Source: Thalia democratica (lineage: Eukaryota). Taken from it: a DNA stretch of 64,000 nucleotides. The stretch spans positions 36,084,001 through 36,148,000 of the forward strand of contig OZ241827.1 of assembly GCA_965202585.1 (NCBI GenBank), written 5' to 3'. Position numbers and translations under genes: made by a program. A model generated the notes under the pieces. The model did not search any database. It was given only the letters and a program-made list of their open reading frames with translations, and was not told the DNA's origin. Below, piece by piece: positions 1-27,919 of this stretch; positions within the stretch are counted from its first letter, which is position 1, and each line of letters begins with the position of its first letter.

Positions 1-673
1 AACTTAATTTAATTTTATATTTAACAACAATGTTATGTTCAAACTTTGAACTGTAATATTTACAGTGTTTGACAATGACCTTGTTAATTGCTTGTAACAA
101 ACTTTATTGGCATGTTTTTTGTTGTTTTAAATCTAACCGTACTTATAAAAAAACATTTTTAACGAGGTCATTTGAGCTATTTAATGTCTTACCCGGTATT
201 TAAAACCTAAAAATAAAAAAAAATGTTTAAAATTTGTTAGAATATTAAAGTTTTTAAAATCAGTACTAGTTCACTGGCTTTATATTTTTACGAAAAGAAG
301 TTTAAACTTTTGAGACGCATGTAATTGCTTGTTTTGTCAACTAACTCGTGTAAAATGTGAAATGTTTTTTATGTTAAATCTTGTAGAGAATTACTTCGTA
401 TTAATTGGAGCCACAAATGTTTTTCAATTCTTTTGAAACATAACAGGCTTTAAAGTTGAAATATAAATAAACTAATTGACTAATGTTGTGGCTAACTAAT
501 AGCATATAAGTTTGTAAATTTAATTTTTTTTAAATGTTTTAACTTGTTTTTAAAATTGAAATCAAGTAATGTTACGTACATTCTATTTGGACTATTGCAC
601 GAACGGCTCGAGAAACGAATCGGCGAGGAGCGGTACGAGGAGACCGAGCTTTATGTACGAGGAGATATACGGA

Positions 674-1088
674 GAGACGGATCAGAGGATTCTGTAGCGC
701 CAACAGACCGGTAAGGTGAGGCCAGGAGACGGAATCCGTAGCGCCAACAGACCGGTAAGGTGAGGCTAGGAGACGGAATCCGTAGCGCCAACAGACCAGT
801 AAGGTGAGGCCAGGAGACGGAATCCGTAGCGCCAACAGACCGTTAGGTGAGGCCAGAAGACGGATTCCGTAGCGCCAACAGACCGGTAAGGTGAGGTTAG
901 GAGACGGAATCCGTAACGCCAACAGACCGGTAAGGTGAGGTTAGGAGACGGAATCCGTAGCGCCAACAGACCGGTAAGGTGAGGCTAGGAGACGGAATCC
1001 GTAGCGCCAACAGACCGGTAAGGTGAGGCCAGGAGACGGATTCCGTAGCGCCAACAGACCGGTAAGGTGAGGCTAGGAGACGGATCAG
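674..1088. repeat. GC-rich 44-bp minisatellite, 9 copies
   Basis: Unit GGAGACGGAATCCGTAGCGCCAACAGACCGGTAAGGTGAGGCCA. The CAACAG anchor recurs at 701, 745, 789, 833, 876, 920, 964, 1008 and 1052 (44-bp period, one 43). The array is bracketed by GAGACGGATCAG at 674-685 and 1077-1088. Confidence 0.95.
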
Positions 1089-4416: not shown

Positions 4417-5269
4417 TTTAAAATATAATGGTTAAAAGATTTCTTCTAGTTTATAACGGTGTTATTTTTGAGTAATGTTGTCAGTTCTTTTATCTAGAAA
4501 AGTTGGCTTGCTTAACCGAAACTAGTTATTAAGAAAAAATAATTATTTGCATACATCGTTAAAAGTATATGATAAAATATTTTTAGCTTTAATTCTATTA
4601 TTTTAAATATTTGTTTTTTCAAACTGATTTAAAACATTTCTTGAGCTTCAAATAATCATAAAACATCTTCAAACTACGTCTAAATTATATTATTTTAAGA
4701 CATTACTAAATATAGTTTTACTTATATTTAAAATATTGCTGGTTGAAATTAATTTTAAGTGCATCAGTTTTTGAAATCAGTCATATCTAATATATATCAA
4801 AACAATTTTTTTCAAATTTTAGAATACATACTAAATATATAATTAAATTTTCTTTAGCGCGACCGCTTAAATTCTGTGATAAATCTTGAGTTACAGTAGA
4901 CTATCTCTTTTAATAGTTTTTTTTTAATCTTTTTTCATTACTATCATGTTCTTTTTTAATTGACCACTCTAACAGAATCATTATTCTTTTCAGTTTATTT
5001 TTCTTATATATGACTAAAATCTTTTTAATTCTTTTTGATACGAATATTTTTAGCAACTATGAATTTTAACTTTATACAAGTATTTTTCTTCATTTTTTTA
5101 CGTTCATAATGTTTTTTTATTGGACTTTAAGATACATTTTTTAATTTTAAATGTCCAAGTAATTTTTTTATATTTCTTCTTGAAAAAAAAACTTAAAAAG
5201 AACATGTTGCAGTTAAATGTGTTATGTAAATGCACAATGACTTAAAACAAGTATAATCTATTATATAGT

Positions 5270-9235: not shown

Positions 9236-10208
9236 TTTTAATAAAGTAAAAAGAAATGGTAAAAATGGTTTCTATCTTTTAAAAATATATTTGATTTCTT
9301 AAATCTCTTAAACTTATAAAATTTGTTTAGCTTTTTTATTTTAGTCACTACAATCTGTTAAGAATATTTTAAATTTTTAAATCAGTATTTATTTTGGCCA
9401 TCATCATCAAGGTTGAGATATTTCGCGCCATCAACAATAACTAATGAACACAATAACCACACGATGCTGTTTTTGATAGTCTTGTGGTAAAGTTTTTTAT
9501 TTATTATTAATTATTCAAAATATATTTTACATTAATTTTTATACAGCAGATGTTTTGTAATATTTTTGGTTTCCAAAGTAGTATTATAAAATAAGTAAAC
9601 GTAAAAAATTTATCACTAATTTATACTAAACTTTCAATATATAACATCTATATTAATATTTATAACTTTTCTGATATGTAAATAACTTAATATTGAAGTA
9701 ATATACTAGTCAACATTAAAAAAAAAGTTACAAATAAATTGTTTCAACTCTGTTGACCTTATATTCTTAAATTTTTTTAATGTACTTTTGAAATTGTAAG
9801 AAATAAGCGTTTTATGATCAACTGCGTACTATAAGTTACTAAACTTGTTTTGTTTTTTAAGCTTAAATAATTATTTTGAAATAAGCATATGATTTTATTG
9901 AACAATAAAATTAGTTATCGCTTGAACTTTAAAAATAAGTATGGTACGATTAGAACTTTGTTTATGTGGTAAAATTTTATGAAAAAAAAAGTTTTTACCT
10001 TTTGATTAAAACTAACTAAATTGCTGCTTTGTTTTCTATTTAGTTTTTAGAGTATGTTATTAAAATGTATAAAAATTTTAAATACAAATTATTTTATCAA
10101 GTTAGGGTTCTAAATTTAACACGATAATTCTCTTAAAACTTTATGTACTTATATTTCAGTTTGACCTATATTTAACACGTATAATACTACTAATTAGTAG
10201 TTATATAA

Positions 10209-10614
10209 GGTTACATGATAATAAAATTTCCGCCAATTCAAATTCCAACAATTCAAATTCTTAAAAGATATTTAAGAGACTATATCTCAAAAAACCATAT
10301 ATGTTTTGAAAAATAATAAAAAAAACGTATGTAGGTCTTATTAAAACCTACAAGCCAATTTTACCTTTTTTGAAGTATGTTAAATAATTTTTGAGGTATT
10401 TAAAATTTATTAGAAAATACTACATTTAAAAAATAGTTTTAGCCATATCTTAAAATAATAATTGAAATTTTGCAAAATGAAAAAAATCATTGGAGATGTT
10501 ACTTAGACCTACAAACTTATTTTTTATTTATTTTATATACAGAATACTTTTTTTGAGTTGTGGTCCTTCAAAAAAGAGAAATTGAATTGTCGGAATTAAA
10601 ACTTTCGTGCACCC
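10209..10614. mobile_element. Possible MITE in the ALDH8A1 intron
   Basis: Imperfect inverted ends: ATTTCCGCCAATTCAAATTC near 10227 and GAAATTGAATTGTCGGAATT near 10578. Confidence 0.35.
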
Positions 10615-11146
10615 GTTTATAAAAGTTTAGTAATAACATCTAGTTTGTACTTTCGATCTAAAATAGTACATTAAAATAAGCTAATATTAATTGTCTAAAC
10701 TCTTAATATACTAATTAAAAATCATTAGAGTTTGACTGTATAGGTTATCCATAATTTACAATAAATATTTTACTGTATAGCAAGAAAGTTAAAATTATTA
10801 CGTTAAAATTATTAAATTATAAAAAAAACTTGATAGTTTTTATGCTCTAGTTTTTAAACCTAGACTCTTATGATCGTTTTGATATTAAAAGGCTAAAACT
10901 TTTAAAAAACTAACTGATATAAACATAAAAGCTATATACAAACTACATTTACATGTCGTTCGTTGCCAAAATAGTTAATATCTATTAACACAAACTATTA
11001 AAGTTTTACTTTACGTTTGTAGTAATATTTCTAAACATATTTACATATTTATACTTGTAAAAATATAGTTTTGTAGTTAAATCTGAAATTTATTATTATT
11101 CAATTTTTAAACTGAAATTGTTTAAACTATAGATAAAAATACTTAC

Positions 11147-12373
11147 TTCGTTTTCGTTTTTGAATGGAGTAACGCAAACAACTGGACCAAAAATTTCTTC
11201 TTTCATGCATGGATGGTTATCATCTAACCCAGATATTATAGTTGGTTGTATAAAATATCCCATGCTTATATCATTTGCTAAAACTAATTCATCAACACCA
11301 TCTCCGCACCATAGTTTTGCTCCTGAGTCACGAGCCATTGATATATACTTCTTTACTTTATCATAATGCTGTTTGCTTACTAGCGCACCACAGTTCGTAG
11401 AACAATCGTCTACTGCCCCAACTTTCAACTCACGAACTTTTTTAGTATATTGAGAGATAAAACTGTCAAATATATTTTCATGCACGAAAATTCTACTAGT
11501 ACACAAGCAAACTTCACCTTGGTTTGTAAAAGCTGACTTAACGAGTATTGGTAAACTTTTTTCTAAGTTAACATCTTCAAATAAAATCGCAGAATTTTTA
11601 CCACCTAATTCTAATGATAACTTTTTACAATATTCAGAAGATGATGCTATTATGTGTTTTCCGACAGTTGTACTACCAGTGAACGAAACTAGTGGAACGT
11701 TTTTGTGCTTGACTAAAGCATCCCCTGCTTTTTTTCCTGATCCAAAAACAATATTGACAACTCCTGCTGGTAATGATGATGCTTTTAGGACTTTGCATAA
11801 TAACCAGGCTGTCGCACTTGTAACTTCCGAAGGTTTTGCAACGCATGTATTTCCAAATGCAATTGCCGGCGCGATTTTCCATGTCAATAGATATAATGGT
11901 AAATTCCACGGACTTATAAGACCAGCAACTCCAACAGGCATTCGATCAACATAGTTAAGAGCGACTCCACTAGCAAATGGAATATCGTTCAGCTTTGTAC
12001 AAGTACTTGTGCTGTGTAAAATTGCACTTGCAAAAAATCTAAAGTTGTACACTGCTCTTGGTATATCAACATTCTTTGCTAGTAACACTGGTTTTCCTTG
12101 GTCTTGTGCTTCTACACCAGCGAACTCGTCTAGTCTTTCTTCAATCAAGTCTGCAATGTTGTTTAAAATACTTGCACGATATTTAGGACTAGATGTAGAC
12201 CATTTTTGAAATGCAGATTTTGCTGAGACAACAGCCTTGTTTACATCGGCTGCTTCACTGTCAGGAACTTTAGCATTTAGCTTAGTAGTTGAAGGATTGA
12301 AGCTATCAATAAAATCTTTATTGATTGGGTCTGTGAATTCATTGTTTATGAAGTTTTTAATATTAAAAACCAT
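11147..12373 (-). CDS. ALDH8A1: ALDH8A1-type 2-aminomuconic semialdehyde dehydrogenase, exon 1 (409 codons; 489 aa with exon 2)
   Basis: ALDH motifs ISPWNLP, FTGS, LSLELGGKN (catalytic Glu), GEVCLCTSRIFV (catalytic Cys) and EEIFGPV. DQGK...DIPRAVYNFRFFAS is typical of ALDH8A1. Donor GAA|gtaagt at 11147/11146. Confidence 0.93.
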
Positions 12374-12849
12374 TTTAGTTTATAAAATAATCTGTTTACA
12401 ATAACAATTTTTAATGCTCACTTTTGAGTTTTAATCTTTATTTAAAAATCATATACTTCACTTGCTATTTTTTCGATTTTTATAAAAACATAACAATATG
12501 TGAAATTAATTTATCGTGAAATACGTACTAATCTTTTAAAAATCAATTATGCTAGATATGTGAATAAATTAAGGTGGTAGATACTTAAAATAGAATAGAG
12601 GACACAAACATTTTTATATATATTTTATTAGTTATTCAACATGAGTTTTCACCTGCCAACTTATTTTCACTGTATAAGCAAAACATTTACAGGAAAACGG
12701 TAAAAAAAAATTCACAAGTCTGAAGTGTATATAACAAAGTATGAAATGAAATTAATCGCTAAACAGCCTACAACAATTGATCCATCTAAAAATTCAGCTA
12801 ATTATTTTGATATATAATTTTGCTTATTGAGCGAAAAAAAAAGCGCTAA

Positions 12850-13705
12850 GAAAAATTGTTATAAGGACCTGATGTACAAAAAAACTTAGTTATCATACAG
12901 ATACAGTTCAATGTCTTGTCCAGGACTTATATAAAGCAAAACTCAAAGATATTTTTAGCTGGTTTGTATGAAAATATGGATGAGATTTTAAAGTATGTTT
13001 GTGACCTAAAGTGAAGGAACATTGATTTTAGAATAAATTGGGAGGTGAAAGAAAGAGCACATCCTATAGCAGGTGGTAATAATAACCGGGTATGGAGGAT
13101 ATACTTAAAAGAGGTAACTGCCGTTGTGTATGCGTTTAAAAAAAGGGTTGCTTAAAGAAAAGAAGCAAATTTATATCTTCTTGCCGACATATAAAAAACT
13201 TTCTCTTAAAGTTTAATAAACTTTAAAAGTTTTAATTTCGAAGTTACTTAGTTGTGGTTTTCTAATTTTAGTTGTTTGTTTCGAACAAAGTTAGATTTTT
13301 GCACTGAAATGCGTCTTGTGTAAAATTTCATAATTATTTCTTTTTTTTTGTCTTTTTGTTTAATTTGTTTACTAATGTTTAATTCGAAATTAAACAGGTA
13401 AAGCTTATATGCAAAGTATATATGAAACAATTAAACTCTTTCTTTTTTTTTGAATACACATTTTGTAATAAATTGTTTAAAAGCTATTTAAGAAGGCTCA
13501 AGTGAAGTTGATATAGTTAACTTAATTTGAAATAATTTTAATATTTATGCAAACTTAGCGTGTCTTATTTTTAAAATGATTTATTTAGTGGCGTAACAAT
13601 CCTTATAGTTTTTTTGATTAATTTCATGTGCATATCATATTATCAAAAAAAAAAAACTGAGGATCTGTTCTGTCTAGCAAAACAGAGAAACAATTGCACC
13701 AGTAA
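12850..13705 (+). mobile_element. PLE fragment 1: degraded GIY-YIG 3' end plus pseudo-LTR
   Basis: Broken translation LKYVCDLK*RNIDFRINWEVKERAHPIAGG...KEVTAVVYAF...KRSKFISSCRHIK is homologous to ORF 20453-20857. Ends in a degenerate HHR at 13657. Confidence 0.8.
13657..13703 (+). ncRNA. Degenerate type I hammerhead ribozyme
   Basis: CTGAGGA-t-CTGTT..AACAG-a-GAAA-CAATTGC-A-CCAGT. Stem III palindrome is ACAATTG with U16.1 changed to C. The 5' arm of stem I is replaced by an A-run. Confidence 0.55.
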
Positions 13706-13769
13706 AATACTTGATGTTTTATTAAAACATTACCTATATATTTATTCTTTCAGGACTTTTTTATGAAAA

Positions 13770-13803
13770 CTAGGTTTCGGTCAAAGACCTCGTCAGTGCT
13801 TAA
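13770..13803 (-). ncRNA. Partial hammerhead ribozyme core
   Basis: Minus strand reads TTAAGCA-CTGACGA-GGTC-TTT-GACC-GAAA-CCTAGT. Core and helix II are intact; the 3' arm of stem I was not found. Confidence 0.5.
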
Positions 13804-14842
13804 ATAAAAATCTAAAAAGATATGTAACAGTCATTGAAAATAGTATTTAAACAACTAAATAAAAACAATTTTTACTAAAAAACAAAACAAATTGAATTTT
13901 AATCTTAAGGTTGAATTTATGGTAAAGTTTAAATTTTAGTTAAGTTTTGAAACCATTATAATGATAGAAAAAATGATAAAAACGTATATGAAGGCTTCTT
14001 TTTTCTTCTAGTGAGTTTTCAAAATAAACATAGCTTAAATAAAAATGTAGTTAATAGTAGTAAATGAGCTTTAAGTTGAGATACATTTTAATGAAGCTCA
14101 TTTTAATCGTGATGTAACTATCGAAAATTTAAAGAACTTTATGCTTGTAAAAACTACGAAAATTTGAAATTTTTCTTGAATGCATTTTATAAAAGTTTTT
14201 AGTTTTAAGAAAATAGTAAAAAAAACTTTTTAAGAGTATGCGTAAAACCTATATCACAAACAACTTAAGACTTAAGTTTTGAAGTTGAGTTTTTTGAAGT
14301 GCGGGCAGGAATAAAATGGTTCGTACCGTTTATTTAAGTTATCCCTTCTGTCGGCTTTGGCAATCGCGACTTTTTCTAGTATGCAAATACTGCAAATAAC
14401 TGTGGGTTTTTGGCTTTGCCAATATGGTGGATTATTTCCCAGTCTATTTTATAATCAATGTTGTTATTTTTAACTTTCAAGATATATTTCGATATTTCTG
14501 TGCCGTTTTCTTCGTAGTTTTCAAAATCACTAATATGGTTATACTATCTTTTTTTTGAAAGTACCACGCGTTGAGCCCAAATAGTTTTTTGATTCTTTTT
14601 CTGATCTGACTGTTGCTTTATATATGAAATTTTCAACTAAGCATTTGTTATTGAGAAGACATTTATTTTTTGTTCGAAAGTTGCAAAGTGTTTTGTTTTC
14701 TTCGTCGTTTTTGGTTTTTAAGTATTTTCGATTATGTTTTTGGATTGATTTCTTAATTTTGCTTATGCAGCTATATGAAGTTTTACAACTATTTCTATTT
14801 ATTATTTTGTTTAACTTGTGATCTTCTTTAAAATTTTTATCT

Positions 14843-15037
14843 GGTATACCATTAAAATCCACCCGCGTTCAAAATCCGACCGATTTTTTTTCTTTATTTA
14901 TTAATTTACTTTATATATTTTTTGCATATTTTTTATTTATTTTTTATTTATTTTTCACAATCACTGTTACCCCTAACCCTTACCCTCGATCAGTAAGCGG
15001 TTCTCGAATTTGACTGGGTGGATTTTGAACGTGTCCC
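14843..15037. mobile_element. Mutator-like MITE inserted in PLE fragment 2
   Basis: Same family as 30669-30803 and 34120-34254 (AAAATCCACCC / GGGTGGATTTTGAACGTGTC ends, internal TAACCCTTACCCTCGATC). Imperfect 9-bp TSD sharing TTTATCT. Confidence 0.75.
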
Positions 15038-15399
15038 GTTTATCTATTAGTTGCAGAAACGCTTTATCTATGTTGGTTCTTACTGACCGGCAGTAAGGTG
15101 GGTTGAAATAGATTGTTTTTCTTGTTCGTGTTGTTTTCTTTTTGTTTTATTGATTTGAGTATTTAAGTTTTTGTTTGAAATTTAAGTAAGTTGAAGCATT
15201 CTGCTATCTTGTTATTGATTCTTTGAAAGTTTCCTAGGTTTTTGATAGTCTGTTGAGTCTTTTTTCAATCATTTTGGGAGGTTCGTTTTGATAATGGACG
15301 GATGGTTCGAATAATTGTTAATATAGTTGGTACTTAAGTTTTTTTTTTGATATGGTTTGAATGTGTTATTAGCAGTATCTAGGGATATATCTCGGAATT

Positions 15400-15945
15400 T
15401 AAAAACAAAATAATAAATAGAAATAATTGTAAAATTTTATATAGCTGCATGAGCAATATTAAGAAATTAATCCAAAAGCATAATCGAAAACACTTAAAAA
15501 CAAAAAACGATGAAGAAAATGAAATACTTTTCAACTGTCGAACAAAAAATGAATTTTATCTCAATAAAATATGCTTAATCGAAATTTCATATATAAAGCA
15601 AGAAAAAGATCAGAAAACGAAACAAAAAAACTATTTGGGCTAAAGGGTTGGGACTTTCAAAAAAGATGGTACAACCATATCAGTGATTTTAAAAACTACA
15701 AAGAAGAAAGCCCACAATTGGGATATTATTATTATTTTTATTATTATGTTATTTTCGAAACATAACTAAAATTTAAACTTTACCATAAATTCAATCTTAA
15801 GATAAAAATTTAATGCGTTTTGTTTTTAAGTATAAATTTGTTTTTAATTAATTATTTAAATACTATTTTCCATGACTGTTACATATCTTTATAGATTTTT
15901 CATTTAAGCATTGACGAGGTCTTTGACCGAAACTTAGTGTTAACG
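15400..15945 (+). mobile_element. Inverted partial duplicate of PLE fragment 2
   Basis: ORF 15449-15643 (IQKHNRKHLKTKNDEEN) is homologous to minus-strand ORF 14539-14862. Ends in TTGACGA-GGTC-TTT-GACC-GAAA at 15911-15932, an HHR core with C3 changed to U. Confidence 0.85.
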
Positions 15946-16039
15946 TATTATTTCTCTTTTAGTAGTTGAGATCTCTTTATTTATTTTAAAAAAATCAAAA
16001 CATATAATACATCTATATATATATATATATATATATACC

Positions 16040-16430
16040 ACAGATGTTTTTGTGTCAAAACTTTATTCCGGCTAACGGCGTGTCACTAAAATTTAGCAAA
16101 AGTAGATTATGACGTAGTTTTGAAACTATCAAAAATCATGCAAAACGGCTTGTGCATGATTTTTAATAGTTTCAAAATTACGTCATAATCTACTTATGCT
16201 AAATTTTTAACTTTCAATTGTGTGTTTTGTTTTGTGCTTTATTTTGAACTTGTTTTGAAGCTGATGAATGCATAAGCACGAAACTCGAGTCCTTTAAGTT
16301 TTACATCTTGAAATAAACCTTTTTATTAATAAAGCCCTTAAGGTGGGCTCAGTGTGAAAGATTTTATCTATCAAGCTAAATAACTTAATTCTATATACAT
16401 ACAAAATAAGGTGTTATTCAAACTTGAACA
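16040..16430 (+). mobile_element. Family-A PLE pseudo-LTR with fold-back 5' end
   Basis: Roughly 54-bp inverted arms at about 16090-16206 around AAACGGCTTG. Homologous to 24300-24560. Preceded by (TA)n at 16012-16037. Confidence 0.8.
16255..16297 (+). ncRNA. Minimal type I hammerhead ribozyme, family A
   Basis: TTGAAG-CTGATGA-ATGC ATAA GCAC-GAAA-CTCGAGTC^CTTTAA, GUC cleavage site. One mismatch in helix II. Confidence 0.8.
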
Positions 16431-16520
16431 CCTTCTACTGAACCCACTTTAAGAGCTTTTAAATAATTTATTGAAAAAGTATGATTTAAAAAATACTGGT
16501 ACTTTACGATTTTAAATTAA

Positions 16521-16568
16521 GCTTGCTGATGATTAAGGCGTCTAGTCTTATGAAACATATGTACCAGT
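16521..16568 (+). ncRNA. Hammerhead ribozyme, family B, partly degenerate
   Basis: CTTG-CTGATGA-TTAAG..CTTAT-GAAA-CATATGTA^CCAG. Palindromic stem III ACATATGT, GUA site, one mismatch in stem I. Confidence 0.7.
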
Positions 16569-16619
16569 ATCTTTTAAATTGTAATTTTTCAATAAATTGT
16601 ATATATACATTTATATTAT

Positions 16620-17845
16620 AATAAAACAACTATTTTTCGAATCGTTTACTTAGTTTCAATGCTTAGCGCATGTCTTCAGAATGAAATAAAGAACAAAGCA
16701 AAATTTAAAAAAAATCACACAAAAAAACACATTGTGATGTTTCAAATAAAATTGAATAATTTTAGTTAGCCTATTTTAAAAACAACTTATGTACAAGTCA
16801 ACATATTTTTGCTTTGTTTGTTCTTGTTTTTGGATTTATTTTATTGTTATTTTTTGTTATTAATTAGTGGTTTTTGTTCTTTTAAAATACATGTTTTTTG
16901 CCAATTTTTTGCCTATTTTAGTTGCTACAGTTAGGGAAAAAGGTGGGTTAAAATAAATAATTTTTCTTTTTCTTTGCTTTTTTGTTGTTTTTTCATTTGC
17001 CTTTTGGTATGTTAAGTTGACTTTGTTATTGGTGAATTCTAGTGCTGATTGATAACTATGTTTTATACGGTTAAATGATTCTTCGTTACTTGATAAATTG
17101 TTTAGTCTTTCGTTAATAGTTATAGGTAATTGTTTTAATATTTTATTAGGGTGGTTTGATTTGTTGCTAACATAAAGGATATCCGAATTTGGTTTTCTGA
17201 ATGGGATGTATGTTTTGTTGGGTAAGTTTAGTTCGATATCTAAAAAGTCTGTTTTGATTAGGCCTGAATCCACTGTTATTTTAAAACCCCATTTGTTAAA
17301 AATTTTGTGTAATTCTTTTGTTGTGTTTTCTATGATTCTCGGCGATTTAGATTGGATGACCGCAAGGCCATCGTCTCTATATATACCGAATTCTTCTTCA
17401 TTGAATATATTATTATTTTTTTATTTCGCTTAGCATGAAAAGTCCTACCATGTCGCACACTTCGGCTCCATTGTAGGATCCTATGCTAACATTAAAAAGG
17501 TCAGAGGTGTTTATTTTTTCCCATGTTTTGTTTTCGTGAAAGATTGTAGACTTGCAGGAATGTAGTATTAACTTTTGATCGTAGTCTGTGATTGGTGTGA
17601 ATTTTTCAGCAAATTTTAACGAGTTAATTAAAGTTGTTTTTGTTATGGATGGGTAAAATATATTGATATCGAATTTTATGAATCGGGTTTTAGGGGTTAT
17701 TTCTAGTTTATTGAACCAGTTTATAGCGATGTCAGTGTTTTTCCATTGATTTAGTTTTGAGCCTATTATTGTTCTTTTATTTATTGTGTCTAGTTTAGCT
17801 TTCGTGGAATTTATTGAAAGGGGATTTGAAGGGATACAAAACTCT

Positions 17846-17848
<3 letters not shown>
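16620..17848 (-). mobile_element. PLE fragment 3: RT core with the endonuclease deleted, plus pseudo-LTR
   Basis: LNQWKNT, IKFDINIFYPSIT (RT motif A), GSYNGAEVCDMVGL, GIYRDDGL (motif C), TDFLDI and IIYFNPPFS. After KIGKK it jumps to the 3' UTR. Bounded by (TA)n at 17850-17880. Confidence 0.9.
16640..16686 (-). ncRNA. Hammerhead ribozyme, family C
   Basis: Minus strand reads TTTCATT-CTGAAGA-c-ATGC GCTAA GCAT-t-GAAA-CTAAGTA^AACGAT. Homologous to 24868-24914. Confidence 0.7.
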
Positions 17849-17883
<35 letters not shown>

Positions 17884-17904
17884 GTTTATTTAAAGATGCA
17901 AAAC

Positions 17905-17947
17905 TCAAAGGACTCGAGTTTCGTGACTATTCACTCATCAGCTTCAA
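17905..17947 (-). ncRNA. Minimal type I hammerhead ribozyme, family A
   Basis: Reverse complement reads TTGAAG-CTGATGA-GTGA ATAG TCAC-GAAA-CTCGAGTC^CTTTGA. Confidence 0.9.
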
Positions 17948-18482
17948 AACAAGTTTAAAATAAAGCACAAAACAAAATCACCAATGAAAGTTAAAAAATT
18001 TTTGCATAAATAGATTATGACGTAATTTTGAAACTATCAAAAATCATGCAAAACGGCTTGTGCAAAAACTAATTCACCAATCGACAATAAACTAGCAAAA
18101 ATTCATATAACTTCAGTGAGTAACTATATATTAGGACAGATAATTGAAAGAGATACAAAAGAAGCGAGTTTGTATCGTCTTGTAGACATATAAAAAAGTC
18201 GCTTTTAAAGTTTAACAAGTTTTAATTTAATCTTAAAATAACCTAAATTTCAAATTGCAACTTAATTTTACCTTTATCTCTTTCAATTATCTGTCCTAAT
18301 ATATAGTTACTCACTGAAGTTATATGAATTTTTGCTAGTTTATTGTCGATTGGTGAATTAGTTTTTGCACAAGCCGTTTTGCTTGATTTTTGATAGTTTC
18401 AAAATTACGTCATAATCTATTGATGCAAAAAATTTTAAACTTTCATTAGTGATTTTGTTTTGTGCTTTATTTTAAACTTGTT

Positions 18483-18525
18483 TTGAAGCTGATGAGTGAA
18501 TAGTCACGAAACTCGAGTCCTTTGA
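18483..18525 (+). ncRNA. Minimal type I hammerhead ribozyme, family A
   Basis: TTGAAG-CTGATGA-GTGA ATAG TCAC-GAAA-CTCGAGTC^CTTTGA; cleavage predicted after 18519. Confidence 0.9.
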
Positions 18526-18912
18526 GTTTTGCATCTTTAGATAAACCTTTTTAATAATAAAGCCCTCAAGGTGGGCTCAGTGTGAAAAGTTTAATTTGTT
18601 AAGTTAAATAACTTAATTCTCTATATATATATTATAGAATTAAGTTATTTAACTTAATAAATTAAATTTTTCACACTCGAAACTCGAGTCCTTTGAGTTT
18701 TGCATCTTTAAATAAACCTTTTTAATAATAAAGCCCTCAAGGTGGGCTCAGTGTGAAAAATTTAATTTATTAAGCTAAATAACTTAATTCTATATATATA
18801 TATTTATATTTATATATAGAATTAAGTTATTTAACTTAATAAATAAAATTTTTCACACTGAGCCCACCTTGAGGGCTTTATTATTAAAAAGGTTTATTTA
18901 AAGATGCAAAAC

Positions 18913-18955
18913 TCAAAGGACTCGAGTTTCGTGACTATTCACTCATCAGCTTCAA
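18913..18955 (-). ncRNA. Minimal type I hammerhead ribozyme, family A
   Basis: Identical to the 17905-17947 motif. Confidence 0.9.
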
Positions 18956-19163
18956 AACAAGTTTAAAATAAAGCACAAAACAAAATCACCAATGAAAGTT
19001 AAAAAATTTTTGCATAAAAAGATTATGACATTTATTTTGCATAAATAGATTATATATATATATATATAGAATTAAGTTATTTAACTGAATAAATTAAATT
19101 TTTTCACACTGAGCCCACCTTGAGGGCTTTATTAATAAAAAGGTTTATTTAAAGATGTAAAAC

Positions 19164-19206
19164 TCAAAGGACTCGAGTTTCGTGCCTATGCACTCATCAG
19201 CTTCAA
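19164..19206 (-). ncRNA. Minimal type I hammerhead ribozyme, family A (helix II variant)
   Basis: Helix II is GTGC ATAG GCAC, a compensatory change relative to GTGA/TCAC. Confidence 0.9.
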
Positions 19207-19279
19207 AACAAGTTTAAAATAAAGCACAATGTAAAACTTTCATTCGTGATTTTGTTTTGTGCTTTATTTTAAACTTGTT

Positions 19280-19322
19280 TTGAAGCTGATGAGTGCATAG
19301 GCCCGAAACTCGAGTCCTTTGA
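19280..19322 (+). ncRNA. Minimal type I hammerhead ribozyme, family A
   Basis: TTGAAG-CTGATGA-GTGC ATAG GCCC-GAAA-CTCGAGTC^CTTTGA. One mismatch in helix II. Confidence 0.82.
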
Positions 19323-19385
19323 GTTTTACATCTTTAAATAAACCTTTTTATTATATATATATATATAAATATATATATCATATAT

Positions 19386-20365
19386 ACACCGGTCGCAGTG
19401 AACAACCGCCTCCAGAAGATTTCTAGCAGTCAAAGCATTTTTAAGGAAACAACCCAGCAATACCAGGAAGCTATAAGAGAAAGTGGATACGATCACGAGT
19501 TAGCCTATAGCCACAAAAACGAGAAGGGTAACAACAAGAAAAGAAGGAGAAGAAATATTTTATATTTCAACGCACCATTCTGCAAAAGTGTGGCAACACG
19601 GGTTGGGAAGCGCTTCCTAGAGATTGTGGACAATAACTTTACTGAAAACCATCCATATTGTAAAGTTTTTAACAGGAAAACACTAAAAGTGTCCTACTCC
19701 TGCATGCCAAACATGAAACAACTTATAATGGCACACAATCGAAAGATGTTAGACACGCAGTACAAAGAGAGGCGAATGTGTGACTGCAAAAAACAAGAAT
19801 GCCCGGTAAATGGAAGTTGCCTAATGGAAAATATTATATTTAAAGCGACAGTCATAACTGATAACCAGACCAAGTTTTATGTAGGATCGACTGGACTATC
19901 GTTCAAGAATCGCTACACAAAGCACAAGTACAGCTTCAAACACTAAAAAACATAAAAATACGACAACTTTATCGCAGTACATTTGGAAACTAAAAAATAA
20001 CGGAGTTAATTTTAAAATTCAGTGGGAAATATTAACAAAAACAAAAAATAAATACAGTTTAAAAAACGGATGTAAATTGTGCAATGCGGAAAAAATCGAA
20101 ATTTTAAAAGTTAAAAAATCTCAATCTCTAAACAAAAGAAACGAATTACAAACTGGCTGCATACATTATCGAAAGCAATTTATCTAAAAACTCTGTTAAT
20201 AATTTTGTCTAAAATCAACTATCTATTATTACGTATTACCTAATTTTGTATAATTTTATTGCTGTACTTACAAGTTTGCTTTTCATTGAATAAAACTTGG
20301 CTGAGGACGCGTATTAAACGCAGAAACAGCTGTACCAAGCAAAAGTTTATTTTGTGTATGTTATT
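19386..20365 (+). mobile_element. PLE fragment 4 (5'-truncated: RT thumb, CxC linker, GIY-YIG, pseudo-LTR)
   Basis: ORF 19398-19946 has ILYFNAPF, VSYSCMPN, CDCKKQECPVNGSCL, IIFKAT and FYVGST. One frameshift, then KNGCKLCNAEK...LNKRNELQTGCIHYRKQFI* at about 20187. (TA)n on both sides. Confidence 0.92.
20296..20339 (+). ncRNA. Minimal type I hammerhead ribozyme, family D
   Basis: CTTGG-CTGAGGA-c-GCGT ATTAA ACGC-a-GAAA-CAGCTGTA^CCAAG. Perfect 5-bp stem I, palindromic stem III ACAGCTGT, GUA site. Confidence 0.9.
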
Positions 20366-20429
20366 TCTATATATATATATATATATATAAAATAAGGTTA
20401 ATGTTTTATATACATTAACCATTATTATA

Positions 20430-21110
20430 TATACGGTGGCTGTAAATACAATTTGAAGGGGGGCAATTGCCGGTCAGAGAACATTATTTACAAGGCAACA
20501 GTTAACTCTGACCTTGAAAAGAAGTTCTACATCGGCCTATGCTCCACTCAATTCAGATTTCGGTATGCCAACCATAAAAAATCCTTTAAAGGTGGTGTAT
20601 ACGAAAATGAAACTGAGCTTTCGAAGTATGTTTGCGGCCTTAAGCACAAAAACATTGATTTTAAATTAACTCGGGAGGTGATAAAAAGAGCACAGCCAAT
20701 AGCAGATGGTAACAACCCTGTTTGTAGGCTGTGCTTAAAAGAATCAACAGCCGTTATGTATGCGTTAAAAAAGGAAGGTTGTTTAAATAAGAGAAGCGAA
20801 TTTATATCGTCTTGTCGACATATAAAAAAGCTTCTTTTAAAACACAACAAATTTTGAAGCATTTTATAGTCAATTAACTGTTGTTTTCGTTAATTTTAGT
20901 TGTTTAATTAGTTAGAAGGTAGATCGATTTTTGTACTGAATATTTGTAATGTACAATATTACGTCATACTGTTTTTTGTTTTTTTGCATAACTTTTGTAT
21001 CTTTGTTTAGTACAGTGCTTTGTATTTTGAATTTAACTGGCTGATGATCAAAGCTTTATGAAAAATTAAAGCTTTGTGAAACATATGTTCCAGAATTTTT
21101 AAAATCGCCA
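20430..21110 (+). mobile_element. PLE fragment 5 (GIY-YIG endonuclease plus pseudo-LTR)
   Basis: ORF 20453-20857: NIIYKATV...FYIG...RYANH...CRLCLKE...LNKRSEFISSCRH (GIY-YIG with CCHH residues). Confidence 0.92.
21037..21093 (+). ncRNA. Type I hammerhead ribozyme, family B
   Basis: CTGG-CTGATGA-t-CAAAGCTTTA/TAAAGCTTTG (perfect 10-bp helix II)-t-GAAA-CATATGTT^CCAG. Palindrome ACATATGT, GUU site. Confidence 0.85.
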
Positions 21111-21114
21111 TTTG

Positions 21115-21146
<32 letters not shown>

Positions 21147-22900
21147 TTATTTATTTAATTATATAAAAACTTATGAAAAATATTACCCAATAACAGATAA
21201 AGAAATGAATTTAATTATACACTCTTGTAAAGCAATTTTAACTCATAAAAGCCAAACCTGGGAAAAAACAAATTCAGACCAACTATTTAATGTAAGTATG
21301 GGATCATTTAACGGGGCAGAAATCTGCGATTTAATAGGGTTATTTTTACTAAATGAAATCAAAAAAAGTAAGATTTTTATAGATAATGAATTCGGATTAT
21401 ATAGAGATGACGGGCTAGGGATAATAAGAAGCAAATCACCGAGATCAGCCGAAAACACCGCTAAATATTTATTTAAATTATTCAAACAAAACGGCTTTAA
21501 AATAACAATAGAATCCGGATTATTCCAAACAGACTTCTTAGATGTATCCTTCAACATATCAAACTCAAGTTACCAACCATACAACAAACCAAACTCACCA
21601 ATTTTATACGTAAACTACAACTCCAACCACCCCCGACAAATACTAAAACAACTACCCGAAACAATAAACAGAAGACTAATAAAACTATCTAATAACGAAG
21701 AATCCTTCAACAATGTAAAAAATGAATACCAAAAAGCATTAAATTCGGCCAATTATAAAAACACCTTAAAATACGATAAGACCACTTTACCAGAAAGAAA
21801 TAAAAAACAAAGAAAAAGAGACATAATATATTTCAACCCACCATTCAGTCTAAATATAAGTTCAAAAATAGGCAAACAATTCTTAAACCTGATTACTACA
21901 TCATTTGACGAAAACCACCCATTCCATAAAATATTCAACCGAAACACAATCAAAATATCTTACAGTTGCACAAATAATTTCAGAAGTAAAATAATAGCTC
22001 ACAACAACAAAATATTAAACAAAAGCAATATAGACGATAAAAGCACCATAAAAGATAAACTTTGTAATTGCCGTAAAGAACCTTGCCCTTTAAATAACGA
22101 ATGCCTAGTGTTAAATATAATTTATAAAGCAACAGTAACATCAAATAAAACAACAAAGCAATATATAGGGTCGACAGGAAATACCTTTAAACAAAGATAC
22201 AGAAACCACAAATCATCATTCAACAATATTAACAAAAGACACACAACAGAACTAGCGAATTACATATGGAACTTAAAAGATAACAATACAGACTACAAAA
22301 TTAAATGGGAAATATTAAACAGGACAAAATTAAAATTCAATACTAAATTCGGCTGCAAACTTTGTAACTTAGAAAAAATAGAAATCGAAAAATCAGATAA
22401 GAACGTAACACTAAACAAGAAAAGCGAAAGACAAAACAAATGCATCCATTATCAAAAATACTTTTTTAACAAAATTAAAACCAACTAAATATTAAAACAA
22501 AATAAAATCGCAGCGGCAAACACGAGTATTTTATAGCATTTTATAACATTTTTCCCAACAGCCTAAAAGATTTTTCTAATAGCTTAAAACATTTTTCCAA
22601 AATAACCTTTTTAAACTTTCCTAAAAAGCATAGAATAACATTTACAGCGTATTTCAAATTCAACTAATCGTACAATAAACTGTACCATTACTACGTCATA
22701 ATTACTATAAAAAATTCTAAAATCGAAATTTCTGTTCACTATTATAATAAACTACAACTCACTGAAGATCACATGAAATTTTACATTTCAATGTGTGAAA
22801 CAGCTGTTTGAATTATAGTTTTTATATAATTAAATAAATAAATATTAAGCTCCAATTTGATTTGTCGAGCACTATCGATCAGAACTTTGTATAAAACCTT
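21147..22900 (+). mobile_element. PLE fragment 6, Neptune-like, 5'-truncated, with an uninterrupted RT-to-endonuclease reading frame
   Basis: ORF 21112-22488 (the start is an artifact of the TA tract) has MGSFNGAEICDLIG, GLYRDDG, TDFLDV, YFNPPFS, CNCRKEPCPLNNECL, IIYKAT..YIGST, RYRNH, CKLC and KCIH. It is followed by a pseudo-LTR with an HHR. Confidence 0.95.
22756..22814 (+). ncRNA. Type I hammerhead ribozyme, family E
   Basis: AACTCA-CTGAAGA-t-CACAT..ATGTG-t-GAAA-CAGCTGTT^TGAATT. Palindrome ACAGCTGT, one mismatch in stem I. Confidence 0.8.
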
Positions 22901-22937
22901 TAATATATATATATATATATATGTTTAATATATGTTA

Positions 22938-22980
22938 TCAAAGGACTCGAGTTTCGTTACTATTCACTCATCAGCTTCAA
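22938..22980 (-). ncRNA. Minimal type I hammerhead ribozyme, family A
   Basis: As 17905-17947, but helix II is GTGA/TAAC (one mismatch). Confidence 0.8.
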
Positions 22981-23518
22981 AACAAGTTTAAAATAAAACA
23001 CATAACAAAATCACTAATGAAAGTAAAAAATTTTTTGCATAAATAGATTATGACGTAATTTTGAAACTATCAAAACTCATGCAAAACGGCTTGTGCAAAA
23101 ATTAATATACCAACAGACAATAAACTAGCAAAAATTCATATAACTTCAGTAAATAACTATATATTAGGACAGATAATTGAAAGAGATAAAGATAAAATTA
23201 AGATGCAAATTGAAATTTAGGTTATTTTAAGATGAAATTAAAACTTGTTAAACTTTAAAAGCGACTTTTTTATATGTCTACAAGACGATACAAACTCGCT
23301 TCTTTTGTTTAAACAACCTAAATTATCTGTCCTAATATATAGTTATTCACTGAAGTTATATGAATTTTTGCTAGTTTATTGTCTGTTGGTATATTAATTT
23401 TTGCACAAGCCGTTTTGCATGATTTTTGATAGTTTCAAAATTACGTCATAATCTATTTATGCAAAAAAATTTTTACTTTCATTAGTGATTTTGTTTTGTG
23501 CTTTATTTTAAACTTGTT

Positions 23519-23561
23519 TTGAAGCTGATGAGTGAATAGTCACGAAACTCGAGTCCTTTGA
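23519..23561 (+). ncRNA. Minimal type I hammerhead ribozyme, family A
   Basis: Consensus family-A motif; cleavage predicted after 23555. Confidence 0.9.
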
Positions 23562-24490
23562 GTTTTGCATCTTTAAATAAACCTTTTTATCAATAAAGCC
23601 CTCAAGGTAGGCTCAGTGTGAAAAATTTAATTTATTAAGTTAAATAACTTAATTCTATATATTTATATAGAATTTTATATATAAAATTTTCAACAAACAT
23701 AATATGGGAATAAGTTATTCGTGTACGGCAAATTTAGAGAATATCATTAAGGCACACAACCAAAAAATTTTAAATCAAAACTCAGGAATTCAAAGTCAAT
23801 GCGGCTGCGCTGGTAGCTGTAAATATAATTTGAAAGGGGGTAATTGCCGTTCAGAGAACATCGTCTACAAGGCCACAGTTAACTCTGGCGTTGAGACGAG
23901 ATTCTATGTCGGCTTCTGCTCGACTCAGTTTAGATTCAGGTATGCCAATCATAAAAAATCTTTTAAAGGTGGCATATATGAAAATGACACTGAACTTTCG
24001 AAGTATGTTTGTGGCTTAAAGCGCAGCGGCATTGACTACGAAATATCCTGGGAACTTATAAAAAGAGCACAGCCATAGCCGACGGCAATAGCCCAATATG
24101 TAGGCTGTGTCTCAAAGAAGCATCAGCCGTTGTATATGCACTGAAAGACAAGAGATGTTTAAACAAAAGAAGCGAGTTTGTATCGTCTTGTAGACATATA
24201 AAAAAGTCGCTTTTAAAGTTTAACAAGTTTTAATTTAATCTTAAAATAACCTAAATTTCAAATTGCAACTTAATTTTACCTTTATCTCTTTCAATTATCT
24301 GTCCTAATATATAGTTACTCACTGAAGTTATATGAATTTTTGCTAGTTTATTGTCGATTGGTGAATTAGTTTTTGCACAAGCCGTTTTGCATGATTTTTG
24401 ATAGTTTCAAAATTACGTCATAATCTATTTATGCAAAAATTTTTAAACTTTCATTAGTGATTTTGTTTTGTGCTTTATTTTAAACTTGTT

Positions 24491-24533
24491 TTGAAGCTGA
24501 TGAGTGAATAGTCACGAAACTCGAGTCCTTTGA
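24491..24533 (+). ncRNA. Minimal type I hammerhead ribozyme, family A
   Basis: Consensus family-A motif; cleavage predicted after 24527. Confidence 0.9.
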
Positions 24534-24557
24534 GTTTTGCATCTTTAAATAAACCTT

Positions 24558-24588
<31 letters not shown>

Positions 24589-24699
24589 GTATTATATATT
24601 TTTAAGAGAATAGTGAAATAATTGTATTTGATAACTTAGTGTTTTAATAATATATATACAAAAAAAAATTACTTAATCTTTTTTTATTAAGTCCGCTTG

Positions 24700-24960
24700 A
24701 AAAGGCTTTAAAATGACTTATTTAAAAGTTAATAAAAAACAAAGCAAAAAATAAGTTAACTTGTACATAAGTTATTTTTAAGATAAGCTAACGAAAATTA
24801 TTCAATTTCATATGAAACGTCATAATGTGTTTTTTGTGATTATTTAAAAATTTTGCTATGTGCTTTATATCGTTCTGATGAGACGTGTTAAACGTTGAAA
24901 CTTAGTAAACGATACGAAAATTAGTTGTTTTTTTGTATTATAAATCATTTCAAAGTTATA
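24700..24960 (+). mobile_element. Solo pseudo-LTR of the PLE fragment 3 family
   Basis: Aligns by eye with the reverse complement of 16620-16810. Confidence 0.8.
24868..24914 (+). ncRNA. Minimal type I hammerhead ribozyme, family C
   Basis: TATCGTT-CTGATGA-GACGT GTTAA ACGTT-GAAA-CTTAGTA^AACGATA. Perfect 7-bp stem I, near-palindromic stem III ACTTAGT, GUA site. Confidence 0.9.
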
Positions 24961-27381: not shown

Positions 27382-27919
27382 GAGAACGGGTTAAAATTGC
27401 ACGAAGACAAATTTGCACGATGGGTAAATTATGCACGAGTTACAATTTTGCACGAGGGTAAAAAAACGAACAAAAAAAAACATAAATTAAAAAAAAAAAC
27501 AAAAAAATAAAAAATACTGACCGAGGGTAAAGATTAGGTGTATCAGTGATAGTAAAAATATAAATAAAAACATAACTTATAAATTTTTTTATAAAAAACA
27601 AACAAAAGCTACCGACCTAGGGTAAGGGTTAGGGGTAACAGTGATAGTAAAAAAAAATAGTAAGAAGAAAAAGTAAAAAATTAATTAACAAAAAAGAAAA
27701 CTATAACATACCGACCGTGGGTAAGGGCTAGGGGTAACAGAGATAGTAATAAAAAGAAAAACTAAAAAAACATATACTTAATAAAAAAAACTACTAAAAA
27801 AAAATTCAACCTGTGCAAAAATGACTCCGTGAAATATTGTCTGCTCGTGCAAAAGTGTCTTCGTGCAATTTTGTGCTCTCGTGCAATTTTGTACGCTTGT
27901 GCAAATTTGACAGCTACCC
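27382..27919. mobile_element. Non-autonomous Mutator-like element
   Basis: Perfect 9-bp TSD CATTACAAC at 27373-27381 and 27920-27928. Subterminal TTGCACGA / TCGTGCAA arrays are in inverted orientation. Three internal GGGTAAG..TTAGG..GTAACAGTGATAGT-type repeats. Confidence 0.85.

Follow-up and report, generated by a model that had tools for sequence, protein, structure and literature searches.

A dense cluster of hammerhead motifs in a tunicate genome as the probable 3' ends of nested, 5'-truncated Hydra-clade PLE copies

The region between 12.9 and 25 kb of the window (the whole 64-kb stretch of Thalia democratica DNA analyzed here) is very probably (we put this at about 0.9) an insertion nest of approximately 20 5'-truncated, non-autonomous ("dead on arrival") PLE copies of the Hydra clade, which belong to at least five families (A to E). 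The original prediction saw a special "ribozyme field" in the many hammerheads of this region, a description that we do not retain, because the density is explained by 5'-truncated PLE insertions nested at (TA)n sites, and roughly one site in four is defective. The count of ribozyme motifs is simply the count of PLE 3' ends.

The nest contains eight reverse-transcriptase/GIY-YIG ORF fragments. A tblastn search with full-length relatives found ORF fragments in the window only at 14281 to 24215, every one of them 5'-truncated, and blastn added a fragment at 12945 to 13374. The coding features are as follows:

11096 to 12373, minus strand: first large exon of an ALDH8A1-like aldehyde dehydrogenase (Pfam Aldedh, E = 7e-128), the flanking host gene outside the nest
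12945 to 13374, plus strand: oldest PLE fragment, C2-like, with the 3' part of the ORF and part of the 3'UTR (blastn to reference copies, 70 to 72% identity)
14281 to 15397, minus strand: ORF fragment F1 (tblastn), frameshifted, residues ~401 to 709 of a full-length relative
15407 to 15795, plus strand: F2 (tblastn), head-to-head with F1, both of family B (inverted repeat I10, 87%)
16884 to 17832, minus strand: F3 (tblastn, 55% identity to P0003), residues ~205 to 522, RT part
19389 to 20193, plus strand: F4 (tblastn), residues ~441 to 712, endonuclease domain included
20459 to 20839, plus strand: F5 (tblastn, alignment A5), endonuclease domain
21151 to 22485, plus strand: F6, the longest (tblastn), residues ~272 to 715, 84% identity to the full-length relative P0003
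23680 to 24215, plus strand: F7 (tblastn), endonuclease domain, within the longest family A copy (23684 to 24557)

The oldest fragment begins 572 nt upstream of the ALDH8A1 ATG and is also found in the orthologous Tara contig L085; orthology with the related genome stops at 13446, where the remaining nest starts. The C3 copy bearing F6 has 99.4% DNA identity to the Tara contigs L001 to L003. Family A is represented by 11 copies, which align collinearly with one copy that carries an ORF, are 5'-truncated at eight different points, and form direct head-to-head junctions. In total, the nest holds six head-to-head pairs of same-family copies, and hammerheads therefore occur on both strands.

All of the motif coordinates predicted earlier proved accurate. 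The core CTGANGA occurs 27 times in the 64-kb window, compared with an expectation of 10.8 +/- 3.3, and 17 of the 27 lie within 13657 to 24881. We searched with a strict type I descriptor (core, helix II of at least 3 bp, helix III, UH, and stem I of at least 4 bp) and with a covariance model, R1, trained on external loci alone and on none from the window. The 19 sites, named by the position and strand of their core where this helps, are as follows:

13657 to 13702, plus strand: decayed hammerhead, family E; core and helix II intact, 16.1 = C, stem I absent (R1 8.7 bits)
13752 to 13796, minus strand (13796-): decayed hammerhead, family B; core and 4-bp helix II intact, stem I lost, no model match
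15911 to 15955, plus strand: decayed hammerhead, family B; core begins TTGA (C3 to U), cleavage triplet GUG
16253 to 16299, plus strand (16261+): hammerhead, family A2; A.C at 10.1/11.1, rest intact (Rfam 25.8 bits; R1 23.9 bits, E = 2e-4)
16518 to 16571, plus strand (16526+): hammerhead, C2-like; U.U at 10.1/11.1, AUAU loop, single stem I mismatch (R1 18.5 bits, E = 0.009)
16639 to 16687, minus strand (16679-): degraded hammerhead, family D; stem I broken (R1 8.7 bits)
17903 to 17949, minus strand (17941-): intact hammerhead, family A1 (Rfam, strict descriptor, R1)
18481 to 18527, plus strand (18489+): intact hammerhead, family A1 (Rfam, strict descriptor, R1)
18678 to 18720, plus strand: half-site 18679, a family A copy 5'-truncated within the ribozyme; begins at G12 (GAAAC), without CUGAUGA and helix II
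18911 to 18957, minus strand (18949-): intact hammerhead, family A1 (Rfam, strict descriptor, R1)
19162 to 19208, minus strand (19200-): intact hammerhead, family A2; helix II GUGC/GCAC (Rfam, strict descriptor, R1)
19278 to 19324, plus strand (19286+): hammerhead, family A2; one helix II pair broken (R1 15 bits, E = 0.1)
20293 to 20342, plus strand (20301+): intact hammerhead, family C1; C.A at 10.1/11.1, AGCU loop (R1 21.4 bits)
21033 to 21097, plus strand (21041+): intact hammerhead, family C2; 10-bp helix II, U.U at 10.1/11.1, AUAU loop (R1 12.7 bits; fold z = -3.2)
22754 to 22816, plus strand (22762+): hammerhead, family C3; core, helix II, and helix III kept, stem I interrupted by two C.A mismatches
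22936 to 22982, minus strand (22974-): hammerhead, family A1; one helix II pair broken, 3' strand of stem I truncated (Rfam, R1)
23517 to 23563, plus strand (23525+): intact hammerhead, family A1 (strict descriptor, R1)
24489 to 24535, plus strand (24497+): intact hammerhead, family A1, ~280 nt past the F7 ORF remnant (strict descriptor, R1)
24867 to 24915, plus strand (24875+): intact hammerhead, family D; 7-bp stem I, 3-nt helix III loop (R1 19.8 bits)

The nine sites given as intact satisfy the strict descriptor, for which 300 dinucleotide shuffles gave a mean of 0.02 matches per shuffled window. R1 found 11 sites with E < 0.01 (best E, 6e-5) and two further weak ones, and its search of the whole window returned no match beyond 16253 to 24915; besides intact sites it detected 16261+, 22974-, and 16526+ (E < 0.01) and 19286+ (E = 0.1), with one helix defect apiece. 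The hammerhead core (CUGANGA, GAAA, the A15.1-U16.1 pair, and H17 at the cleavage site) is complete at 15 sites, those of families A, C, and D and 13796-, and is broken at 13657+, at 15911+, and in the half-site. Thus, the cluster of about 19 hammerheads that had been predicted is real, although about five of the listed sites are decayed or truncated. The Rfam model RF00163 (Hammerhead_1) gave six matches of 24.3 to 25.8 bits (E of 0.013 to 0.041), all under the gathering score of 34. Twenty outside loci with Hydra-clade hammerheads also gave no RF00163 match, so the whole class is missed at this threshold. Six of the predicted cleavage positions (18519, 20334, 21089, 23555, 24527, and 24907) were recovered by the strict descriptor, and direct counting together with homology gives the other two (19316 and 22808). 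In family A, helix II indeed carries a compensatory change (A-U versus C-G at the fourth pair). Also borne out is the presence of several families of PLE-type minimal type I hammerheads whose stem sequences differ while the pairing is kept. A decayed motif homologous to 13657+ is present on the minus strand of L001.

The C1 hammerhead lies 108 nt past the end of the F4 match, the C3 hammerhead lies 274 nt past the F6 stop codon and has an identical sequence in L001 and L002, and the 217 nt upstream of 16679- share 83% identity with the family D copy at 24731 to 24945. The copies of 17941- and 18489+ meet head-to-head at 18155, and those of 19286+ and 19200- and of 23525+ and 22974- are arranged in the same way. 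A repeat scan for (TA)n runs of at least five units found ten in the window, all between 16014 and 24583:

16014 to 16037, 17851 to 17880, 18622 to 18632, 18791 to 18803, 19051 to 19068
19352 to 19367, 20368 to 20389, 21122 to 21146, 22904 to 22922, 24558 to 24583

Every run is directly 3' of a hammerhead, where one or two PLE copies have their 3' ends, and the homology of independent family C3 copies (99.4% identical) ceases within the TA run. This geometry suggests that the PLEs target (TA)n and that an inserted copy would leave a (TA)n tail that invites further insertions, by which the nest may have grown. Since (TA)n is symmetric, both nicked strands could prime cDNA synthesis, which would give the six head-to-head pairs with motifs on both strands. 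Target-primed copies always retain the 3' end, where the hammerhead sits, and hammerheads therefore survive truncation.

Many of the copies are inverted and direct repeats of 95 to 99% identity between TA microsatellites, and regions of this kind are prone to assembly error, so that the copy number might have been inflated by mis-assembly of a TA-rich repetitive region. However, we consider this very unlikely: the copies vary in truncation points, tails, and point substitutions, independent metagenome contigs show the same C3 copy and its end in a TA run, and errors of collapse or duplication cannot create five different families.

It is very unlikely that the short family A copies are non-LTR retrozymes, that is, non-autonomous tandem hammerhead repeats yielding circular RNAs, instead of truncated PLEs. 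They are indeed short (110 to 470 nt), a 171-nt stretch is present twice in tandem at 18507 to 18859, and a recent preprint traces animal retrozymes to PLE pLTRs. Nevertheless, the family A copies match the 3' end of the ORF-bearing copy collinearly and are 5'-truncated at eight different points, they lie head-to-head or tail-to-tail at (TA)n, and the second 171-nt unit begins inside the ribozyme, half of which is missing. Retrozymes are recognized by noncoding head-to-tail repeats of a constant unit with complete hammerheads, and the only tandem in the window is this 171-nt pair. Animal non-LTR retrozymes resemble the window copies in combining short noncoding DNA with a type I hammerhead, probably derived from PLE pLTRs, but they differ in that the window has no head-to-tail arrays of constant period and its copies are 5'-truncation products of coding elements.

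The interpretation of the window as a nest of truncated PLEs is supported by full-length relatives elsewhere, which have an ORF of ~700 aa in units of 2.4 to 2.85 kb. Of 84 outside loci, 52 have a strict hammerhead downstream of the ORF, at a distance of 51 to 534 nt (median, 142), and 21 cases include another one in the upstream pseudo-LTR, ~2.29 kb before the ORF end; 64 of 67 outside hammerheads are on the ORF strand. Paired hammerheads in the relatives are spaced by 2.36 to 2.85 kb, one on each side of the ORF, whereas the window has 3' ends alone. In an alignment of 58 distinct hammerheads, 93% of the cells were paired compared with 24 to 47% when the partners were slid, the covariation score was 0.64 compared with <0.1, and 10 of 12 pairs varied on both sides, values that lean towards structure because the alignment was fitted to the model. 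The hammerheads thus have three covariation-supported helices with an open helix I, the type I topology, and in these PLEs the 3'UTR, which also serves as the pseudo-LTR, contains a type I hammerhead whose helix III is very short.

Searches of Pfam, NCBIfam, and PDB sequences did not recognize the PLE protein. The AlphaFold model of P0003 (pLDDT 84), which is 84% identical to F6, had TERT structures as its top PDB matches (E ~1e-8), and judging from this model the RT is closest to telomerase RT. The C-terminal GIY-YIG endonuclease lacks CCHH and has a CxC-X5-C type linker before it and flanking CxxC and CxH motifs (alignment A5, including F6); in the fold search the GIY-YIG domains of I-TevI, T4 EndoII, and UvrC ranked first, but at nonsignificant E values of 0.66 to 2. 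An N-terminal RWK, and DKT replacing DKG, are present in 20 of 20 aligned full-length relatives, in a region absent from the 5'-truncated window copies. The relatives agree in their protein motifs, their targeting of (TA)n, and their TERT-like fold with what has been published on the Hydra clade of C-terminal EN+ PLEs (Craig et al. 2021, PMC8557442).

Elements of that clade likewise have a single ORF of ~700 aa in a unit of <3 kb, canonical pLTR hammerheads, (TA)n insertion, and tandem and inverted arrangements. Here, however, the adjacent ALDH8A1 gene indicates a tunicate host, a group unnamed in that paper, and all window copies are truncated. The type I topology, short helix III, and palindromic loop are also those of the minimal type I hammerheads of metazoan PLEs (Cervera and de la Pena 2014, PMC4209133), which resemble ours in that helix II starts with an unpaired position and that pairs lie 100 to 700 bp apart on opposite strands. 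Unlike the "min-HHR" descriptor of that study, which omits helix III, the window hammerheads have one (2 bp and a loop, compared with mostly 3 bp in metagenome relatives), and family C has both 10.1 and 11.1 unpaired (U.U; C.A in C1). Poseidon PAc from Anolis carolinensis (PMC11167929) has a similar pLTR organization, AT-rich targets, and an optional 3' "tail" that has been ascribed to reverse transcription starting at either of two sites. In family A, two discrete 3' ends occur ~70 to 90 nt apart, a longer tail than the 30 to 40 bp published for PAc. However, PAc belongs to a different PLE clade, and its hammerhead overlaps the ORF start, whereas those in the window are in the 3'UTR, 30 to 94 nt from the element end.

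Helix III consists of 2 bp and a palindromic tetraloop in four window families, in which the 8 nt from 15.1 to 16.1 form a perfect palindrome (ACUCGAGU in family A, ACAGCUGU in C1 and C3, and ACAUAUGU in C2); families B and D have nonpalindromic 3-nt loops. A short palindromic helix III loop implies dimer action (PMC4209133), and predicted dimers of C1 to C3 form an extended helix III with a ddG of -5.6 to -12.7 kcal/mol. From the folds and the literature, cleavage of read-through transcripts by monomers is predicted to be doubtful, because helix III has only 2 bp and, for family A, a competing non-hammerhead hairpin is predicted to have the lowest energy. Published PLE hammerheads have little or no monomer activity (PMC4209133), and in the one PLE assayed cleavage was protein assisted and dispensable for insertion in vitro (PMC11167929).

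These properties bear on the idea that the array works as a processing device, kept by host selection, in which a long transcript is divided into defined pieces. Seven same-strand sites within 5.6 kb and nine intact motifs, with same-strand partners carrying identical palindromic loops, would suit such a device. However, a transposon copy ending 3' explains every one of the motifs, one in four is decayed, the related genome's orthology ends where the remaining nest begins, and the monomer folds are weak or alternative, in line with the low published activity, so this seems very improbable. Chance matches in AT-rich sequence, which the short core and the missed Rfam gathering score might suggest, are refuted by the shuffles, the model E values, the constant placement of the motifs downstream of homologous ORFs in unrelated contigs, and the covariation.

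We hypothesize, based on the literature, that where tandem pLTR-ORF-pLTR units are active, their multimeric transcripts are processed by hammerheads that pair into double hammerheads by way of the palindromic helix III. The hammerheads in the window are relics, damaged except for the nine structurally intact ones, which might cleave if they were transcribed and paired.

The hammerhead motifs of the window are structurally conserved 3' ends of Penelope-like retrotransposon (PLE) copies, which lie beside (TA)n runs and in which copies of the same family are joined head-to-head. With about 26% G+C and no N, the window is rich in A and T, and CTGANGA occurs in it 27 times, compared with 10.8 ± 3.3 times in shuffled sequences, with 17 of the 27 within 13657-24881. 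The original prediction of about 19 hammerheads between 13657 and 24914 was mostly right. Reading each listed site revealed the layout of stem I, CUGANGA, helix II, GAAA, helix III, UH and stem I, and both the cleavage coordinates and the compensatory helix II change proposed for family A were correct. About 13 sites are convincing hammerheads; the site 22762+ (sites are named by core start and strand) is a homologous hammerhead with an interrupted stem I, and five others are decayed or truncated. A strict hammerhead descriptor was passed by nine window sites, whereas 300 dinucleotide shuffles of the window gave a mean of 0.02 and a maximum of 1. The sites are grouped into the following families:

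Family A: nine sites and one half copy, with helix III loop UCGA
Subfamily A1: helix II GUGA/UCAC
Subfamily A2: helix II GUGC/GCAC
Family B: sites 13796- and 15911+
Family C: four sites, 20301+, 21041+, 22762+ and 16526+
Family D: sites 24875+ and 16679-
Family E: site 13657+

At the gathering thresholds, Rfam gave no match in the window and none in 20 outside loci with clear hammerheads, so the threshold is uninformative for this class of hammerhead. Below the gathering score of 34, Hammerhead_1 matched six window sites with 24.3-25.8 bits (E of 0.013-0.041). When all 49 outside hammerheads were aligned with MAFFT (A2), the 3' strand of stem I was misregistered because of the variable length of helix III, and this alignment was replaced by a subset of 19 sequences (A3), together with a covariance model and an alignment based on the model (A4). 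The covariance model R1, built from 19 hammerheads of outside loci only, was used to search the entire window with filters off. Eleven sites had E < 0.01 (19200-, 17941-, 18489+, 18949-, 23525+, 24497+, 16261+, 20301+, 22974-, 24875+ and 16526+), followed by 19286+ (E = 0.1) and 21041+ (E = 0.55), the weak score of the latter being due to the penalty on its 10-bp helix II. The sites 22762+, 13657+ and 16679- scored at noise level, 13796- and 15911+ were not found in this search, and outside 16253-24915 nothing in the window was better than E ~1.

The attribution of these motifs to PLEs was right. The ORF at 21112-22488 encodes 458 aa and has more than 2300 homologues, with a full length of about 700 aa. 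Using full-length relatives, tblastn found seven ORF fragments (F1-F7), all 5'-truncated and all inside 14281-24215, and blastn found an additional older PLE fragment at 12945-13374. Pfam and NCBIfam contained no meaningful family for the fragments or for the full-length relatives, and a sequence-profile search of the PDB with the protein returned nothing; since the profile libraries did not recognise the protein, a fold search was needed. The best PDB matches of the AlphaFold model of a full-length relative (P0003, pLDDT 84) were telomerase reverse transcriptases, as expected for PLEs. For the isolated endonuclease domain (pLDDT 81), Foldseek ranked the GIY-YIG domains of I-TevI, T4 EndoII and UvrC at the top, although not significantly. 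ORFs in the nest bear a GIY-YIG-like signature. Alignments of 20 full-length relatives, and of the endonuclease region including the window fragments, showed RWK, DKT replacing DKG, the reverse transcriptase motif YRDD, the linker CxC-X4-5-C, and an endonuclease with a GIY-YIG-like core (IY, YIG and conserved R, H, E and N) lacking the CCHH motif and carrying CxxC and CxH motifs. These features agree with the Hydra clade of PLEs as published, for which one short ORF, canonical hammerheads and insertion at (TA)n are described as well (PMC8557442). By motifs, layout and fold match, the window families are most probably Hydra-clade PLE families with their hammerheads.

The same arrangement was found outside the window. 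Full-length relatives were recovered at 80 loci when metagenome contigs were scanned, and a strict hammerhead was present at 52 of 84 outside loci, with 64 of 67 motifs on the ORF strand and the hammerheads 51-534 nt (median 142) past the ORF. Where the contig permits, a second hammerhead precedes the ORF end by about 2.29 kb, so that the units measure 2.36-2.85 kb; this arrangement is the pseudo-LTR-ORF-pseudo-LTR layout of PLEs. In the closest full-length relative (contig L004, 84% protein identity), the hammerhead is 269 nt from the stop codon, compared with 274 nt in the window, and it has the same pairing with entirely different sequences in helix II and stem I. When 58 distinct hammerheads were model-aligned, 93% of cells were paired, compared with 24-47% with slid partners, 10 of 12 pairs changed on both sides, and the covariation score was 0.64 (<0.1 when slid); this alignment was fitted to the covariance model and leans towards the structure, but the fixed position of the hammerhead past homologous ORFs is independent of that bias. 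The F6 ORF has a 100% identical protein in three ocean metagenome contigs, which show 99.4% DNA identity to window 21174-22933, reach further 5' and differ in their 3' flanks, with homology lost inside the TA run. This identity combined with different flanks indicates that family C3, whose element ends 94 nt past the cleavage site, is a multi-copy, recently active element.

Within the nest, each plus-strand fragment listed here is followed 100-280 nt past its ORF by a hammerhead (F4 by 20301, F5 by 21041, F6 by 22762 and F7 by 24497), and the minus-strand fragments show the mirror image. In the copy at 23684-24557, the 3' end is collinear with eleven family A copies, whose 5' truncations fall at eight different points, from reference position 473 to 832. 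Direct head-to-head joins between copies occur at 16150/16156, 18155, 18677/18678, 19229/19234 and 23315/23321, and between F1 and F2 at 15397/15407. The 64-kb window has ten (TA)n runs of 5 or more units, and every one of them is inside the nest, with one or two hammerheads 30-100 nt to its 5' side. Together, the joins and the positions of the runs define the geometry of the nest, with (TA)n at every tail and a direct join at every 5'-truncated head. Family A 3' ends exist in two discrete forms:

17881-17910, 24528-24557 and 19317-19351: short form, in which about 30 nt separate the cleavage site from the start of the TA run
18520-18641, 18691-18818 and 23556-23683: long form, with an extra tail of about 70-90 nt carrying a small hairpin, and with about 100-120 nt between the cleavage site and the start of the TA run

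This geometry suggests how the nest may have formed. In target-primed reverse transcription, 5' truncation would keep the 3' hammerhead, so that the motif count would equal the insertion count. At a symmetric TA target, both nicked strands could prime cDNA, which would produce inverted pairs. An inverted arrangement has been described as typical of PLEs (PMC8557442, figure 2 legend), and opposite-strand hammerhead pairs 100-700 bp apart have been reported (PMC4209133). The two family A 3' ends probably correspond to the optional PLE "tail", which has been explained by two reverse-transcription start sites (PMC11167929). Sub-threshold matches to plant and animal microRNA models at 16102-16195, 18742-18867 and 19199-19287 were rejected as microRNA genes, the hairpins being inverted PLE copies placed head-to-head or tail-to-tail. 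Such long hairpins could yield double-stranded RNA if transcribed.

The ORFs of families A and C2 (23812-24231 and 20435-20855) share 79% DNA identity up to the stop codon, where homology ends; their 3'UTRs and hammerheads are unrelated. Either the 3'UTR and hammerhead were exchanged as a module, or the UTR diverged rapidly and neutrally, which explains the difference equally well.

The motifs had also been regarded as an unusually dense ribozyme field. A transposon nest at a TA microsatellite is expected to produce such density as a by-product. Contig L051 has several hammerheads from two families on both strands within 3 kb (2635-2964 minus and 2-2549 plus), and L010 has three in tandem at 2.4-kb spacing (197-5083), indicating that local crowding of PLE hammerheads is common. 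It is very improbable, in our estimation, that plus-strand read-through of 19.3-24.9 kb forms homo- or heterodimeric double hammerheads that cut defined RNAs of 0.4-1.7 kb, possibly circularised or mobilised in trans by recently active Hydra-clade elements as with retrozymes, with the family A hairpin acting as an off-switch. In families A, C1, C2 and C3, the 8 nt running from A15.1 to U16.1 form a perfect palindrome, and identical palindromic helices III are shared by C1 with C3, by C2 with the 16526 copy, and by family A copies mutually. Dimers of C1-C3 are predicted to have an extended helix III (ddG of -5.6 to -12.7 kcal/mol). The predicted monomer folds are weak, which agrees with the low or absent monomer activity of the PLE hammerheads of PMC4209133; in the only PLE that has been tested, cleavage was assisted by protein, and insertion in vitro did not depend on it (PMC11167929). 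In the family A monomer (18507-18531 and other copies), a predicted hairpin sequesters GAAAC and helix III by pairing them with the 3' strand of stem I; it is preferred over, and incompatible with, the hammerhead fold and could be a conformational switch. Positions 10.1/11.1 of helix II, usually G-C, are unpaired in family C of the window:

16526 (16533/16551), 21041 (21048/21077) and 22762 (22769/22796): U.U
20301 (20308/20322): C.A

They are also unpaired in 18 of the 57 distinct hammerheads of alignment A4, mostly as U.U. Roughly one in three hammerheads of the clade has U.U in place of G10.1-C11.1, a testable variant for ribozyme biochemistry.

The nest starts 572 nt upstream of the ATG of an ALDH8A1-like (2-aminomuconic semialdehyde dehydrogenase) gene, whose large exon (11096-12373, minus strand) falls inside tunicates in the tree with 99/99 support; its closest relatives are 94% and 86% identical proteins from marine samples. 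The position in the tree makes a pelagic tunicate the probable host. Window 10197-13446, including the oldest PLE fragment, is orthologous to 1944-5138 of contig L085 from a related genome (82% DNA identity). Synteny is lost exactly at 13446, the start of the remaining nest, and the alignment covers the near side of the nest only. Lineage-specific growth of the nest, starting from the old copy's 3' end, would fit this pattern but is not proved by it. Elsewhere, the window contains the following:

687-1084: G+C-rich 44-nt tandem repeat, nine copies with 94% match, overlapped by two 116-aa ORFs, neither with a family match
27398-27886: tandem repeats with periods of 34 and 95 nt
53402-53540 and 55448-55695: 15-nt repeat arrays 1.9 kb apart, mutual reverse complements
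61897-62442, plus strand: 181-aa ORF with an RVT_1 match (E = 4e-9), a fragment of a different, non-PLE retroelement

The 15-nt repeat is also present at the ends of contigs L085 and L086, and the paired arrays are possible termini of a further mobile element.

These results bear mainly on annotation, in which masking of the region as a Hydra-clade PLE nest is called for and not its treatment as a new ribozyme system. Its clean geometry, with (TA)n tails and same-family head-to-head joins, is a useful natural record of integration. Tunicates are absent from the paper defining the Hydra clade (PMC8557442), and a Hydra-clade PLE is apparently resident in a pelagic tunicate and recently active, with 99.4% identical copies in several ocean metagenomes.
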